Shown here one piece after another: positions 24,745-29,841 of a stretch of 64,000 nt of DNA. The DNA is taken from sequence record NC_049850.1; one strand, written 5' to 3'. Below the pieces are notes generated by a model. The model ran no database searches and was not told the DNA's origin. It worked only from the letters and a program-made list of their open reading frames with translations. The stretch's first letter is position 1. Every line of letters starts with the position of its first letter. The position numbers and the translations under genes were made by a program.

Positions 24745-25863
24745 TTACTCGCCGTGCTTCAGCAGGTAGCTGTTGCTGATGGCCTTGAACGAGAAGCCCG
24801 ATTCCGCGTGCTTGTACACCTTGCCTTCAGCGGGCTTGCCGTTGATGCCCTTGTGCTCGGCGCGGGCCAGCAGATCGGCCTTCGTCTTCGCGATGTCGTT
24901 CAGACGGAAGTGGCCACCGACCGGAACGTGCTTGATGCCGAGTTCCTGAGCCAGATGCTCGACCTGAACCGGCGTCATGTATTCCTGCGCGTCGATGTCC
25001 CACACGTCGTACAGGAAGAACGCGTGCGTGTCTGCCGGGAAGCCTTCGAAGTTCGACTGGATCGACGAACCGCACATTTCACCTTGAAGCGCGAGCGAGC
25101 GGCCGAGTGCTGCCGTCTTCTCCAGAAGTTGCTCCTGACGCGCAATGCGCCAGAACATGTTGTCTTCGGTCTCGACGAGATCGAGGTTGCGCGAGCACAC
25201 GCTTTGCACGAGTTCCGGAAGCGCACCGTTTTCGTCAGCCTTTGCAAAACCAGCAAAGTACGGGCTGCTCGGAAGCAGAGTGTACGCGGTCAGCGACGAG
25301 CCGTCCATCTTCGTCGTTTCTTGGAAGACCTCTTCGCCCCACTTCTCGAACAGATCGCGGATGTTCTGCACGCGCTCCTGATCGGTCTTCGGGATGAAGT
25401 GCGGGAAGTTGCCGCGTGCGGTGCCGCGCAGGTTCGCAGGGAGCACCTTTTCCCACTTGACGATGCCCAGCGTTTCCGTCAGATCGACTTCAGCGATCTG
25501 CTTGTCGGTCAGGTCGGCCGCGCGATACGTCTTGTCCTCGACGCTGAAGTCGCTCAGTTCGGGGTACAGCGACAGCGGGAGCAGCAGGCCCTGCGAGAGT
25601 TGGCCTTTCAGCTTCATCGACTTGATGCGGGCACCGCGCTTGCCCTCGAACGTGATGAAGCGCGGTTCGAGGAACGCATAGCGCTCGTCGTCGGCCGACA
25701 GGAACGAGTCGATTTCGAAATAGACGCCGATATCGCCCACCTTGAATTCACCCTTCTTGACGACGCATTGCCAGCCGTCGATGAGGGCGAGTTCGATGAG
25801 ATCGGCACCCGTGATCGGTTCGAGTGCGGTGACGCGACGGAACGTTGCGAGTTTGCGAGTCAT
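24745..25863 (-). CDS. ATP-dependent RNA ligase, Rnl2/DRB0094 family
   Basis: KLATFRRV...GADLIE...GWQCVVKKGEF...YFEIDS; TTKMDGSS; QGEM; EGKVYK; FKAISN. Confidence 0.92.
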   Translation of the reverse strand: MTRKLATFRRVTALEPITGADLIELALIDGWQCVVKKGEFKVGDIGVYFEIDSFLSADDERYAFLEPRFITFEGKRGARIKSMKLKGQLSQGLLLPLSLYPELSDFSVEDKTYRAADLTDKQIAEVDLTETLGIVKWEKVLPANLRGTARGNFPHFIPKTDQERVQNIRDLFEKWGEEVFQETTKMDGSSLTAYTLLPSSPYFAGFAKADENGALPELVQSVCSRNLDLVETEDNMFWRIARQEQLLEKTAALGRSLALQGEMCGSSIQSNFEGFPADTHAFFLYDVWDIDAQEYMTPVQVEHLAQELGIKHVPVGGHFRLNDIAKTKADLLARAEHKGINGKPAEGKVYKHAESGFSFKAISNSYLLKHGE

Positions 25864-26665: not shown

Positions 26666-26998
26666 TCAAGCACCAACGATACGAGAGGTCGGGACTTTGA
26701 TGCCCGTGGTTTTCGTCACGTAGCTCGCGATCAGGTCTTCCGGGCACTGGCGCACGAACAACACCATGTCGTGCGGCATCGGGAACTCGTCGAGAGCGCC
26801 GAACACCTTGTGGTTCGAGAGGTACGGCGTGAGCATGACGCCGGTAGCGCCGTTGGGGCCCACGCCCGGGACCGCATGAAGTTCGAACGGCTTGTCGAGG
26901 CCGAGTTGCTTGTCGTTCTCGCCTGCGTAGCGTGCGATCACGGTCTGGCCGTTCTTGAGGTGGACCGCGATCACGGGCTGTTTCTGTGCTTCACTCAT
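26666..26998 (-). CDS. hypothetical protein, possible Sm/SH3-like fold
   Basis: VHLKNGQTVIAR...LDKPFEL; 110 aa. Confidence 0.7.
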   Translation of the reverse strand: MSEAQKQPVIAVHLKNGQTVIARYAGENDKQLGLDKPFELHAVPGVGPNGATGVMLTPYLSNHKVFGALDEFPMPHDMVLFVRQCPEDLIASYVTKTTGIKVPTSRIVGA

Positions 26999-27458
26999 TA
27001 CCGAAATTTCTCCTATACATGTTTTCGAGTGCGAGATAGAGGATGGATTCACGCGACTTGCACTTGGGGTACACCTTCTTGAGCCTGTCGACCATCGCCT
27101 TCTGCTTGCCGGTCAGTCGCAACATCACGAGCGCCGGTTTATTCGGATCGCCCTTTGTCGCGGCCCACGCATTGTACACGACGGTCGCGAGTTCGAGCAA
27201 TCTAGTTGCAGCCTTAGCGGGCTCCCCCTTCAGCAAATCGAAATGCGGTTTGCCAGACTGGAGACGCAGTGCGATAGCGTGCACACGGTTGTGGTGGTCA
27301 GCGCAAAGGGTGACGGTGGGGCCGTCGGTGCCACCGAAGTTACGGGGCACCACGTGATGCACTTCCCGGGATGCGGGCCCGGGCGGGACCGAATCCGTAA
27401 ACCGCTGCTCGCACACATAGCAATATTCGAGTATAACGTGCTTGACTTTTGTCGTCAT
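26991..27458 (-). CDS. HNH nuclease with a C-terminal RHH-like segment
   Basis: CYVC...EVHHVVP...GG...LCADHHNRVH; VMLRLTGKQKAMVDRLK...SRESILYLAL. Confidence 0.75.
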   Translation of the reverse strand: MTTKVKHVILEYCYVCEQRFTDSVPPGPASREVHHVVPRNFGGTDGPTVTLCADHHNRVHAIALRLQSGKPHFDLLKGEPAKAATRLLELATVVYNAWAATKGDPNKPALVMLRLTGKQKAMVDRLKKVYPKCKSRESILYLALENMYRRNFGNE

Positions 27459-28393
27459 TTAGCTGCCTTTATAAGCTGATTGCGCCCCTCTGCGGTGCGG
27501 CGTTTCTGTGCAGCGCTCATAAGAGCACGAGTCTCGTCTGAAAATTCACGGCCCTTCTGCTTTAGGCTTTGCTGCTCGCGATTCTCTTTCGACTCCCAGC
27601 GCTTCAGGGCTGCTTCACGCAGCTTGGCACGGTGTTCTTCAGACTTCGGGCGACCACGTATCTTGTCCGCCTGTTTGGCTATGGCTTCAGGTGTCTTGAC
27701 CTGACCACGCGACGCCTCCGCAAGTCTCGCACGATGGCTGGCAGATTTCGGCTTGCCCTTCAGGGCAGCACTGCGGCGGGCACGAATCGCTTCCGTCTGA
27801 ACAACGTGGGAGCCGCCCTCACCTCCGTCAGTCCCGTTTGTGAGTGGGCCTAGACCCACGTCCCTGCGCCCTATAGCCGCTATCAGAAAGCACTCTTTGG
27901 CTAGGGCCACTGCCTCGATGTCGCCCAAGGTAAGCTGGACAGCGATGGGTTCCACGCCATCGCGATGCAACTTGCGGATCACGTTTGCCTTGAACTTACC
28001 TTCCTCCGGAACCGGATTAAGGCGGGCGTGATCTGCATGATCGTTCAGGCGGCCACCTGTTCCCTTGCCAACATAAAAGGGCTCGTGGGTCAGTGTTACG
28101 CGCTTGCCCGCAGGTAGTGTGTATAGGAACGGCCCGGGCCTGCTTGGATTAAGCAGGGCGTACACGTAGTAGCGTGGTTCCAGCGATAGTGACTTTCGGC
28201 GCATGCTTGCTGCTGCCTGCTCGTGCAGCGCGCGTGCCTTAGCGGCCACACGCCCCACGTACGACCCGGGTGACGCCCCTGCAACGTATGTTTTCAGGGC
28301 GGCGTCCACTTCGGCGGTGCTTGCGTGTTTGACTTGTTGGTCAGCCGCCATAGGACTTGGCGGTGTCTTGGTAATAGTCCGAGGACGGAGCAT
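27455..28393 (-). mobile_element. GIY-YIG homing endonuclease with NUMOD3 repeats (start uncertain)
   Basis: YYVYALL...FYVGKG..R; LTNGTDGGEG; KPKSASHRARL / RPKSEEHRAKL repeats. Confidence 0.85.
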
Positions 28394-28850
28394 ACCGGTA
28401 GTCGCGCGTAAGCTGCACTTCGTGGCTGAACGTGAGCATGCGACGGTCGATGGTGCCGAGCACGTGCGTGATGCTGTTGACGAACGTGCGGACGTGGCGC
28501 TTGAGCGGGACCATATGCGGCACCAGCACCATGTGCGGGAAGTAGAGATTCCCGTAGAACTCGTTCGGAGCCTCTTCGCGCAGGTCTTGAGCCCGAGTCA
28601 GCAGATCACCGCTGGACAGCGGCAGGATCAGCGACGAGTCACCGAGGGCCGTGTCGTACCAGATGCCCATATAGCCGGGCCGCGCGCGATACACCGCACC
28701 CGTGTCGTCGAGCTTCATTTCGGTCTCGGAGATATTGAGCGAGACATAGGCCGCATCGAAGTTCACCTCGAACGGGCAACCGTTGAACACGGTGCGCAAG
28801 TAGTCCAGAGTTTCGTTCGTGGGGAGGGCCATCGTTTCGTACAGTTTCAT
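28341..28850 (-). CDS. 2H-phosphoesterase-fold protein resembling T4 gp57B/Acb1, with altered catalytic motifs
   Basis: ETLDYL, AYVSLNISE, GIW...SLILPLSS..L.TR, YFPHMVL parallel the Acb1 layout (recalled, not aligned computationally). Confidence 0.55.
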   Translation of the reverse strand: MKLYETMALPTNETLDYLRTVFNGCPFEVNFDAAYVSLNISETEMKLDDTGAVYRARPGYMGIWYDTALGDSSLILPLSSGDLLTRAQDLREEAPNEFYGNLYFPHMVLVPHMVPLKRHVRTFVNSITHVLGTIDRRMLTFSHEVQLTRDYRYAPSSDYYQDTAKSYGG

Positions 28851-28860
28851 TCATTCACCT

Positions 28861-29841
28861 TTAACAGAAGCCCCAGTTACGCAGTTGCAGACTGCGACCG
28901 GAGAAAGCGGACGCGAAATCGTCCAGTTCAGACTCACGCATGATCCAGTACCACGAGGCACCAGCGTGCGGCATGGGACGCGAGGTCACGGTCGCGTAGC
29001 GCTGTTTCGTTTCCTTGCGGATTCGCTTGAGCACTCCATCGACAGTGAGGTTCGATTTCGGGTTGATGCTGATCAGAACCTGATCGCGCAGCACCACGTA
29101 GCCACCCAGACTGTCGAACTTGAACCCCCGGGCACGCAGTATCCGGTCGTCCATGATCGTAGCCGGAACGGGCACCACGGAAGTGCGGCCCATAGTGAAC
29201 GCGTGATCCGGATTGCACTTGGGCAATGAGTCACGTGCCCCCGTGACCGAGTTTATCACGTCCCCCAGATTGGAGGCAAATACAGGGTCTTTCAACTCGG
29301 ACTCGGACAGGCGATCACCCGGGCCGTCATAGCGGTCACCGGATAGCAGCAGACTCTGTTCTTGCAGACGGGCAACCGACGCGCGGTACAGGTCTTCGAG
29401 CAGAGAACGCCATTTGCTGATGGCGGACAAATCGACAGAACTCTCGTTCAATTCGCCAAGGTAGGCAATTTCGCGAAGGCTTGTCAATTCGTTCTTGACT
29501 GCGCGCAGCGCGACGCTGGTGCCCTGCGGCAGGCCACGTGCACGGAACTCGCGTACGGCCTTCAGCGCGTCGGTCAGGCGCTTCATCTGGCGCTCCTTGC
29601 TGACGGAGCCCATGCCCGGCAGTCGTCGGAACGCAGTATTCGAATCGTCGAGCAGTGCTCGGATGTCGTCCACTCGTTTTTGCAGCCCGTCGATGATCTG
29701 GCGGGGCTCCTTACCGTTCTTCGATCCGAGTTGCAGCATCGGTATCAGCTTACCAAGCTGAGACTGGTTCTTCGCAGTCAGGCCGTTGCGCGCCTGCATG
29801 CGGTCGAACGTCGAATCGACGACGCGCTGATTGTTTTCCAT
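28861..29841 (-). CDS. hypothetical protein
   Basis: 326-aa ORF. Confidence 0.8.
   Translation of the reverse strand: MENNQRVVDSTFDRMQARNGLTAKNQSQLGKLIPMLQLGSKNGKEPRQIIDGLQKRVDDIRALLDDSNTAFRRLPGMGSVSKERQMKRLTDALKAVREFRARGLPQGTSVALRAVKNELTSLREIAYLGELNESSVDLSAISKWRSLLEDLYRASVARLQEQSLLLSGDRYDGPGDRLSESELKDPVFASNLGDVINSVTGARDSLPKCNPDHAFTMGRTSVVPVPATIMDDRILRARGFKFDSLGGYVVLRDQVLISINPKSNLTVDGVLKRIRKETKQRYATVTSRPMPHAGASWYWIMRESELDDFASAFSGRSLQLRNWGFC

Follow-up and report, generated by a model that had tools for sequence, protein, structure and literature searches.

The window analysed here is a stretch of 64,000 nucleotides from sequence record NC_049850.1 and is part of the genome of Burkholderia phage BcepSaruman (MK552140.1, 263.7 kb; the record position minus 62000 gives the window position). 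Its subject is the gene for gp165 (BcepSaruman_165, 28341..28850, minus strand), which encodes 169 amino acids plus a stop codon and whose GenBank coding sequence (record 90341..90850) is labelled 'hypothetical protein'. We find that gp165 has the 2H fold of the anti-CBASS protein Acb1 (CBASS, cyclic-oligonucleotide-based antiphage signaling system) without the working HxT/HxT tetrad; the assignment draws on the open reading frame, the GenBank annotation, a profile match, an AlphaFold2 model and its VIA alignments. A ribosome-binding site, AGGTGA (28855..28860, minus strand, read from the sequence), lies 4 nucleotides 5' of the gp165 ATG, right after the stop codon of the upstream gene. At the other end, the last 11 nucleotides of gp165 are overlapped by a gene for a GIY-YIG/NUMOD3 homing endonuclease (27455..28351, minus strand; annotation and domain matches). 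The gp165 genes of BcepSaruman and the related phage BcepSauron differ at six codons synonymously and at one non-synonymously.

By itself, the gp165 sequence has no match in Pfam, PHROGs, NCBIfam or the PDB sequences (phmmer), and a word-indexed protein search returned gp165 itself only. The only single-sequence search to find the family was an exhaustive HMMER search with gp165, which gave 78 clusters at 50% identity, nearly all of 160-180 amino acids. We omitted P0018 as spurious (a repetitive protein of 2285 amino acids with 15 short matches), as well as three fragments (P0073, P0074 and a duplicate of the query). The resulting alignment of 75 cluster representatives, which we term A2, was used for the profile, the motif counts and the AlphaFold2 model. 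Representatives at 50% identity count lineages and not genomes. Among isolate phages, tblastn found relatives in BcepSauron (99.4% identity), Ralstonia phage phiRSL1 (ORF007, 42%), Burkholderia phage BCSR5 (36%) and Achromobacter phage Motura (30%). Isolates with a protein of gp165's clade (see below) infect Burkholderia, Ralstonia and Achromobacter; many further members come from metagenomes.

The A2 profile places this family with Acb1. Its matches in the PDB include 9Q2G ('Anti-CBASS protein Acb1' of phage BCSR5, E = 4.6e-15) and 7T26 (FBB1 Acb1, E = 1.8e-5), and hhalign pairs A2 with T4 gp57B, which is Acb1, at a probability of 94.8% (E = 5e-8, 100 columns). Taken individually, 28 of the 75 proteins match the Pfam family Acb1 (PF23474) with E values of 0.1 or lower, including P0008 (E = 2e-5) and P0019 (E = 5e-4) from gp165's own clade. 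Agreement of this order far exceeds chance. At the sequence level, then, gp165 joins the Acb1 family through profiles only.

The structural comparisons give the same answer. The AlphaFold2 model of gp165 built on A2 (mean predicted local distance difference test score, pLDDT, 95.9; predicted template modelling score, pTM, 0.89) has the 2H fold, which is defined by a U-shaped cleft between two lobes, each of antiparallel sheets. Foldseek ranks the Acb1 structures 9Q2Y, 9Q2G, 7T27 and 7T26 at the top (E between 1.5e-8 and 5.5e-6); other 2H enzymes (plant cyclic phosphodiesterase, Usb1, LigT and the poxvirus cGAMP phosphodiesterase) come next. In VIA-align, the model matches 9Q2G with Z = 17.7 (root-mean-square deviation 1.9 Å over 144 residues) and 7T26 with Z = 14.2 (133 residues). 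Acb1 structures head the VIA list (Z of 17.7, 16.8, 14.2 and 13.9), and all other 2H proteins have Z of at most 11.2. So, gp165 is an Acb1-type 2H-fold protein. The initial annotation, made from the sequence alone, had described it as an Acb1-like 2H protein with both HxT motifs altered, and the A2 profile, hhalign, Foldseek and VIA all bear this out. The T4 gp57B motifs on which that annotation had relied agree, as does their order, with the T4 57B protein in the record.

The catalytic residues are another matter. For T4 Acb1, Hobbs et al. 2022 (PMC9117128) defined H44/T46/H113/T115 as the acid-base tetrad and took the H44A or H44A/H113A protein as their control without catalytic activity. 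The hhalign alignment sets Y35-V36-S37 of gp165 (28740..28748, minus strand) opposite T4 H44-S-T46, and H106-M107-V108 (28527..28535, minus strand) opposite T4 H113-I-T115, which confirms the YVS and HMV that the initial annotation had read at these two sites. The His of the second motif is a relic and its Thr is lost. With the first His and the second Thr gone, gp165 lacks the two HxT/S motifs of the catalytic tetrad. Other residues are shared: W64 (28659..28661, minus strand; hhalign and clade conservation) is the counterpart of W74, the base-stacking residue of T4 Acb1 (PMC9117128), and further pairs (gp165/T4) are S80/S88, R86/R94, Y99/F107 and Y103/Y110.

This loss is not peculiar to gp165. 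Among the 75 representatives, both HxT/S motifs are present in 8, the second alone in 7, and neither in 60. Maximum-likelihood trees (quick search, rooted either with the canonical Acb1 paralogues of jumbo phages or with T4 Acb1) separate a sister clade of 11 members, mostly with both motifs (Shimodaira-Hasegawa-like approximate likelihood ratio test, SH-aLRT, 98), from a clade of 64 that holds gp165 (SH-aLRT 98 and 85 in two runs). The minimum number of changes on the tree is 11 for H35, 14 for T/S37, 20 for H106 and 13 for T/S108, although these counts are rough as many forks are weakly supported. Column 35 is His in 9 of the 11 sister-clade members; in the clade of 64 it is Tyr in 13, Arg in 10, His in 9, Gly in 8, and other residues, Phe and Ser among them, in the rest. 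In the same clade, column 37 is Glu, Thr, Ser or Val, column 106 is His (28), Tyr (16) or Phe (13), and column 108 is Val (24), Thr (11) or Pro (6). As a separate observation, Glu stands in place of the first-motif Thr in 29 of the 64 clade members (in patterns such as x-V-E-I); gp165 has Ser there.

When the 169 columns are ranked by entropy-based conservation within the clade of 64, column 35 is 144th, column 108 is 102nd and column 87 (T4 H95, a second-shell position) is 124th. The top 18 include F141, L78, E144, P10, Y54, P105, T14, S80, Y65, S126, R86 and D66. Constraint has thus been lifted at the catalytic positions, whereas the protein as a whole is still constrained. Live and dead members cannot be told apart by isoelectric point.

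Most of the positions that contact the ligand in Acb1 have also changed. The W64 column is aromatic in 54 of the 64 clade members and is the sole mapped ligand-contact residue that is still conserved; Y65 and D66 beside it are conserved in gp165's clade, as are R118 and R121, two basic residues at the start of the helix that follows the motif-2 strand. Y99, the counterpart of F107, is variable. The counterpart of T4 Y12, mapped by chaining the T4-BCSR5 alignment to an alignment of BCSR5 with the family, is column 5 (E5 in gp165), which is Gln, Arg, Glu or Lys in the clade, as against His or Tyr in 7 of the 11 sister-clade members. The counterparts of E141 and W147, whose mapping is uncertain, are not conserved in the clade. 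Among the columns whose conservation in the sister clade is 80% or more, those relaxed in the dead clade include H35, H87 and [DE]148-[ST]149-x-G151. The last of these is at the end of the last strand, which is the expected place of T4's adenine-reading E141 and of the lid hinge. Also, the loop before the C-terminal helix is two residues shorter in the dead clade than in the sister clade.

The two best-conserved polar residues in the clade are R86 and E144. In all 5 of the members whose residue 144 is not acidic, residue 86 is not basic either (Fisher p = 5e-5, with no correction for phylogeny), and the live paralogue of BCSR5 has hydrophobic residues at both positions. Because of this covariation and of the hydrophobic pair in BCSR5, we suggest that the role of R86 and E144 is structural, as a salt bridge, and not that of a ligand site.

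In phiRSL1-like jumbo phages the gene has a fixed place in the genome. Downstream of GyrB/GyrA there is a run of five genes: up326, the Acb1-like gene, HNH155, a gene for a protein of about 230 amino acids and a gene for one of about 310-330. This run was found in every context examined, namely Saruman, BCSR5, Motura and four metagenome contigs from four different subclades (L011, which is 248 kb long, L012, L020 and L021), and the gene order is the same in phiRSL1. The spacing 5' of the Acb1-like gene ranges from an overlap of 4-19 nucleotides to a gap of 13, and the spacing 3' of it from an overlap of 56 nucleotides to a gap of 17. There are no terminator-like sites on the coding strand, and a search of sequencing runs gave no transcriptome of an infection. 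On the short contigs L015, L017 and L018, motif-bearing members likewise stand between homologues of up326 and HNH155 (blastp). Because these flanks are shared, the live and dead Acb1-like proteins are orthologues in one slot. The gene for gp165 behaves like a fixed gene of the core (replication) block, which is untypical of accessory anti-defence genes.

The motif-bearing slot orthologues (metagenomic P0060, P0061, P0065, P0068 and others) have the same flanks and the same length as gp165 and are 26-30% identical to it; Pfam Acb1 matches are on record for P0060, P0061 and P0068. Unlike gp165, they keep W-H-V-T, P-H-M-T-L, the His of column 87 and a [DE]-S-x-G-Y hinge. None was found in a complete genome among isolate phages or IMG/VR contigs.

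Several of these phages also encode a second, intact Acb1. A search of the phage records with PF23474 gave, away from the slot, a single above-threshold match in each of Saruman (57 bits), Sauron (58 bits), BCSR5 (56 bits) and Motura (47 bits). In phiRSL1 there is no PF23474 match in the genome, yet the slot copy is kept. In BcepSaruman the match is gp266 (record 168068-168580, or L006:1438-1950, outside the window), which is annotated as hypothetical and adjoins tail genes, after the tail-collar gene. We read the open reading frames of the second Acb1 in Saruman, BCSR5 and Motura, and both HxT motifs are present in each. The second Acb1 of BCSR5 has the same length as the 9Q2G protein, and the two are identical across the stretch that aligns. 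The protein crystallised as 'BCSR5 phosphodiesterase' is therefore the live paralogue, and the BCSR5 slot copy (QRE00122.1) is the dead one. Our literature search found no paper on 9Q2G and none on catalytically dead Acb1 homologues. Iyer et al. 2021 (PMC7824862) noted 2H phosphoesterases in these jumbo phages and cited QDH83605.1 of Motura, but the degenerate copy is not mentioned; the slot copy of Motura has a different accession (QDH83479.1).

We propose that gp165 is an Acb1-derived pseudoenzyme that is maintained by selection, and we give this a probability of about 80%. The ancestor would have been an active Acb1-type 2H phosphodiesterase in the same genomic slot, from which gp165 would have kept the Acb1-like fold while losing the acid-base tetrad. 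Because the tetrad is replaced by Y-V-S and H-M-V, gp165 is presumably unable to cleave cyclic oligonucleotides by the 2H mechanism; it is this loss, together with the published H44A control, that leads us to set aside the canonical 2H reaction. Cleavage of CBASS signals in this phage would be left to the intact gp266, and purifying selection would keep gp165 for a non-catalytic, binding-type role. Given the computed homology, fold, motif loss, drift of the catalytic columns, slot orthology and intact paralogue, inactivity and selection for a non-catalytic role are what we infer.

Some observations tell against this proposal. First, gp165 retains H106 and has a Ser at the position of the first Thr, and some members of the clade of 64 (P0005 and P0032) keep both His, so weak or altered chemistry may persist in some clade members. 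Second, the mapping of the first strand and of the last 25 residues to T4 is approximate, as it comes from chained pairwise alignments and the ends of aligned ranges, not from coordinates. Third, if the role is to bind a neighbour, then adjacency is weak evidence for it because the whole block is syntenic.

As to what a catalytically dead gp165 would bind, the possibility that we rank first is a macromolecular partner in the tightly spaced, invariably co-inherited up326 / Acb1-like / HNH155 block beside the topoisomerase genes; we offer this tentatively and do not regard it as probable. For the dead orthologues of phiRSL1-like jumbo phages more broadly, it is doubtful, though conceivable, that members of an anti-defence family have here changed from enzymes to binders and act as a nucleotide trap or sensor for an immune signal that active Acb1 cannot cut, or as a ligand-responsive regulatory subunit of HNH155. 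That gp165 itself is a nucleotide sponge or sensor we rate as rather unlikely, and that it binds the ends of nucleic acids as quite unlikely.

The sponge is the role that the initial annotation had suggested, and it deserves a closer look. In its specific form, gp165 would hold a CBASS-type cyclic oligonucleotide uncut and stoichiometrically in the old Acb1 cleft, perhaps one that intact Acb1 cannot cleave. In its favour, the Acb1 fold, the cleft and a C-terminal element past the last strand are all retained in the high-confidence model, the stacking W64 is largely aromatic across the clade, Y99 aligns with F107, and R118 and R121 are conserved. Also, 2H domains can bind nucleotides, as AKAP18 does with AMP. 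However, the columns at the centre of the cleft (35, 37, 106 and 108) belong to the more variable ones of the clade, unlike a conserved ligand pocket, although this bears on the ancestral pocket only. The counterparts of Y12, H95 and probably E141 are relaxed, as is the [DE]-[ST]-x-G hinge, and the loop next to it is shorter by two residues. R86 and E144 co-vary like a salt bridge. The gene has a fixed place in a core block, inactive T4 Acb1 is the negative control for effector inhibition in vitro (PMC9117128), and the literature search found no paper on such a protein. On this mixed evidence, we lean against an unchanged Acb1 pocket in gp165, and a stoichiometric sponge seems unlikely.

A weaker alternative is that gp165 is still an enzyme, in which H106 works with other residues, or a different mechanism is used, on a new substrate. 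H106 and S37 do remain in gp165, two clade members keep both His, and the Glu that 29 of the 64 members carry at the first-Thr position could in principle be a new catalytic group. But position 37 of gp165 is Ser and not Glu, no candidate catalytic residue and no His column is conserved across the clade, and the tetrad columns change 11-20 times on the tree. The initial annotation had mentioned a new substrate as its other option; because no replacement catalytic residues are conserved, we consider this improbable. Finally, the reading of gp165 as a relic without function, redundant beside the second Acb1 of Saruman, Sauron, BCSR5 and Motura and in the course of being lost, is scarcely credible given a frame of constant length (about 160-180 amino acids) in 64 clusters that are less than 50% identical to each other, about 20 strongly conserved columns, a confident model, a slot copy in phiRSL1 that lacks a PF23474 match elsewhere in the genome, and no truncated or frameshifted copies in the loci examined.

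A pseudoenzyme of this kind can be compared with three groups of proteins. With T4 gp57B and FBB1 Acb1 (7T26/7T27), gp165 shares the 2H fold, the motif order and the counterparts W64, S80, R86 and Y103. In contrast to these proteins, its tetrad positions read Y35/S37/H106/V108, its identity to them is 16-19%, and its model shows an additional helix (118-134) and extends further at the C-terminus, where residues 157-168 are helical. The closest solved structure is BCSR5 Acb1 (9Q2G with a closed lid and 9Q2Y with an open lid), with which gp165 has the helix after the motif-2 strand in common. BCSR5 Acb1 and its Saruman counterpart gp266 are encoded in the same jumbo-phage group as gp165; however, they are paralogues at another locus, with both HxT motifs intact and 21-23% identity to gp165.

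A second group is formed by 2H proteins that work without catalysis, as nucleotide binders or structural subunits. The central domain of AKAP18/AKAP7 (AMP binding, 2VFK) and a kinetoplastid mitoribosomal protein (6HIW chain DQ) each match the gp165 model with a VIA Z of 8.6. Neither has a specific relationship to gp165, but by analogy gp165 may use its fold as one or the other of them does. AKAP18 keeps its HxT motifs.

The third group is the class of protein that has been proposed for gp165, the signal sponges of phages, in which binding occurs without cleavage: Acb2, Acb4, Tad1 and Tad2. The folds of these proteins are unrelated to Acb1, and they are oligomers with pockets at the subunit interfaces. 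Acb1 is monomeric (10.1101/2025.07.12.664507).

To our knowledge, Acb1 is known only as an enzyme. The protein gp165 is a variant of this known family and not a new system; what is new is how broad and how old the dead clade is, that it is orthologous to live enzymes of the same slot, and that it coexists with intact Acb1. A large and old clade (64 of the 75 clusters) lacks the tetrad and yet has been retained at a set position in the genome, and several of the phages have an intact Acb1 elsewhere as well. This provides a natural pair, live and dead, with which other uses of the Acb1 fold can be explored. It is also a warning that Acb1-fold matches in jumbo phages should not be labelled as anti-CBASS nucleases before their motifs are checked. 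If gp165 turns out to bind a signal or to regulate the HNH protein beside it, then it would represent a new kind of counter-defence or replication accessory; otherwise it would be a clear-cut phage pseudoenzyme.

Directly 5' of the Acb1-like gene there is always up326 (BcepSaruman_166, 326 amino acids; 28861..29841, minus strand; annotation and locus comparison). Its homologues have 275-350 amino acids, with highly conserved termini and a Trp-rich C-terminus, and we found no relative of it in Pfam, in the PDB (with a profile of 20 sequences) or in Atlas. In phiRSL1 (AB366653.2, L024), the up326 homologue (116-1088) contains an in-frame TGA and is annotated as the overlapping ORF002 and ORF003; this could be a frameshift, a sequencing error or a broken gene.

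On the 3' side of the Acb1-like gene, HNH155 (BcepSaruman_163; 26991..27458, minus strand; identity, blastp and HNH similarity) was found in all genomes examined. Its homologues have 144-160 amino acids, with an HNH motif (CxxC...HH...C..HH) at the N-terminal end, and their C-terminal half is conserved and contains a D-P-N-K motif; blastp matches them in L011, L012, L015, L017 and L018. Among the four isolate groups (including phiRSL1, BCSR5 and Motura), HNH155 is 40-52% identical, which exceeds the identity of the Acb1-like protein. Because it is the better conserved of the two, HNH155 is a fixed, resident gene rather than a mobile one, despite the labels 'homing endonuclease' and 'endonuclease' in BCSR5 and Motura. 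The GIY-YIG/NUMOD3 gene between gp165 and HNH155 is found in Saruman and Sauron only; the insertion is absent from the slot in BCSR5, Motura, phiRSL1, L011, L012, L020 and L021.

The remaining neighbours in the run, of 232 and 331 amino acids, have no relative in the PDB. In Saruman, the conserved block also includes an RNA ligase (a PHA02142 OB domain plus RNA_ligase, phrog_968; 24745..25863, minus strand), which has no counterpart in the block on contigs L011 and L012 (blastp). We considered a role for gp165 in RNA repair with this ligase and rejected it, as the ligase is in the block in Saruman only. On metagenome contig L020, the GyrA-like topoisomerase gene (809-2674) contains an intein (PT-HINT / Intein_splicing matches).

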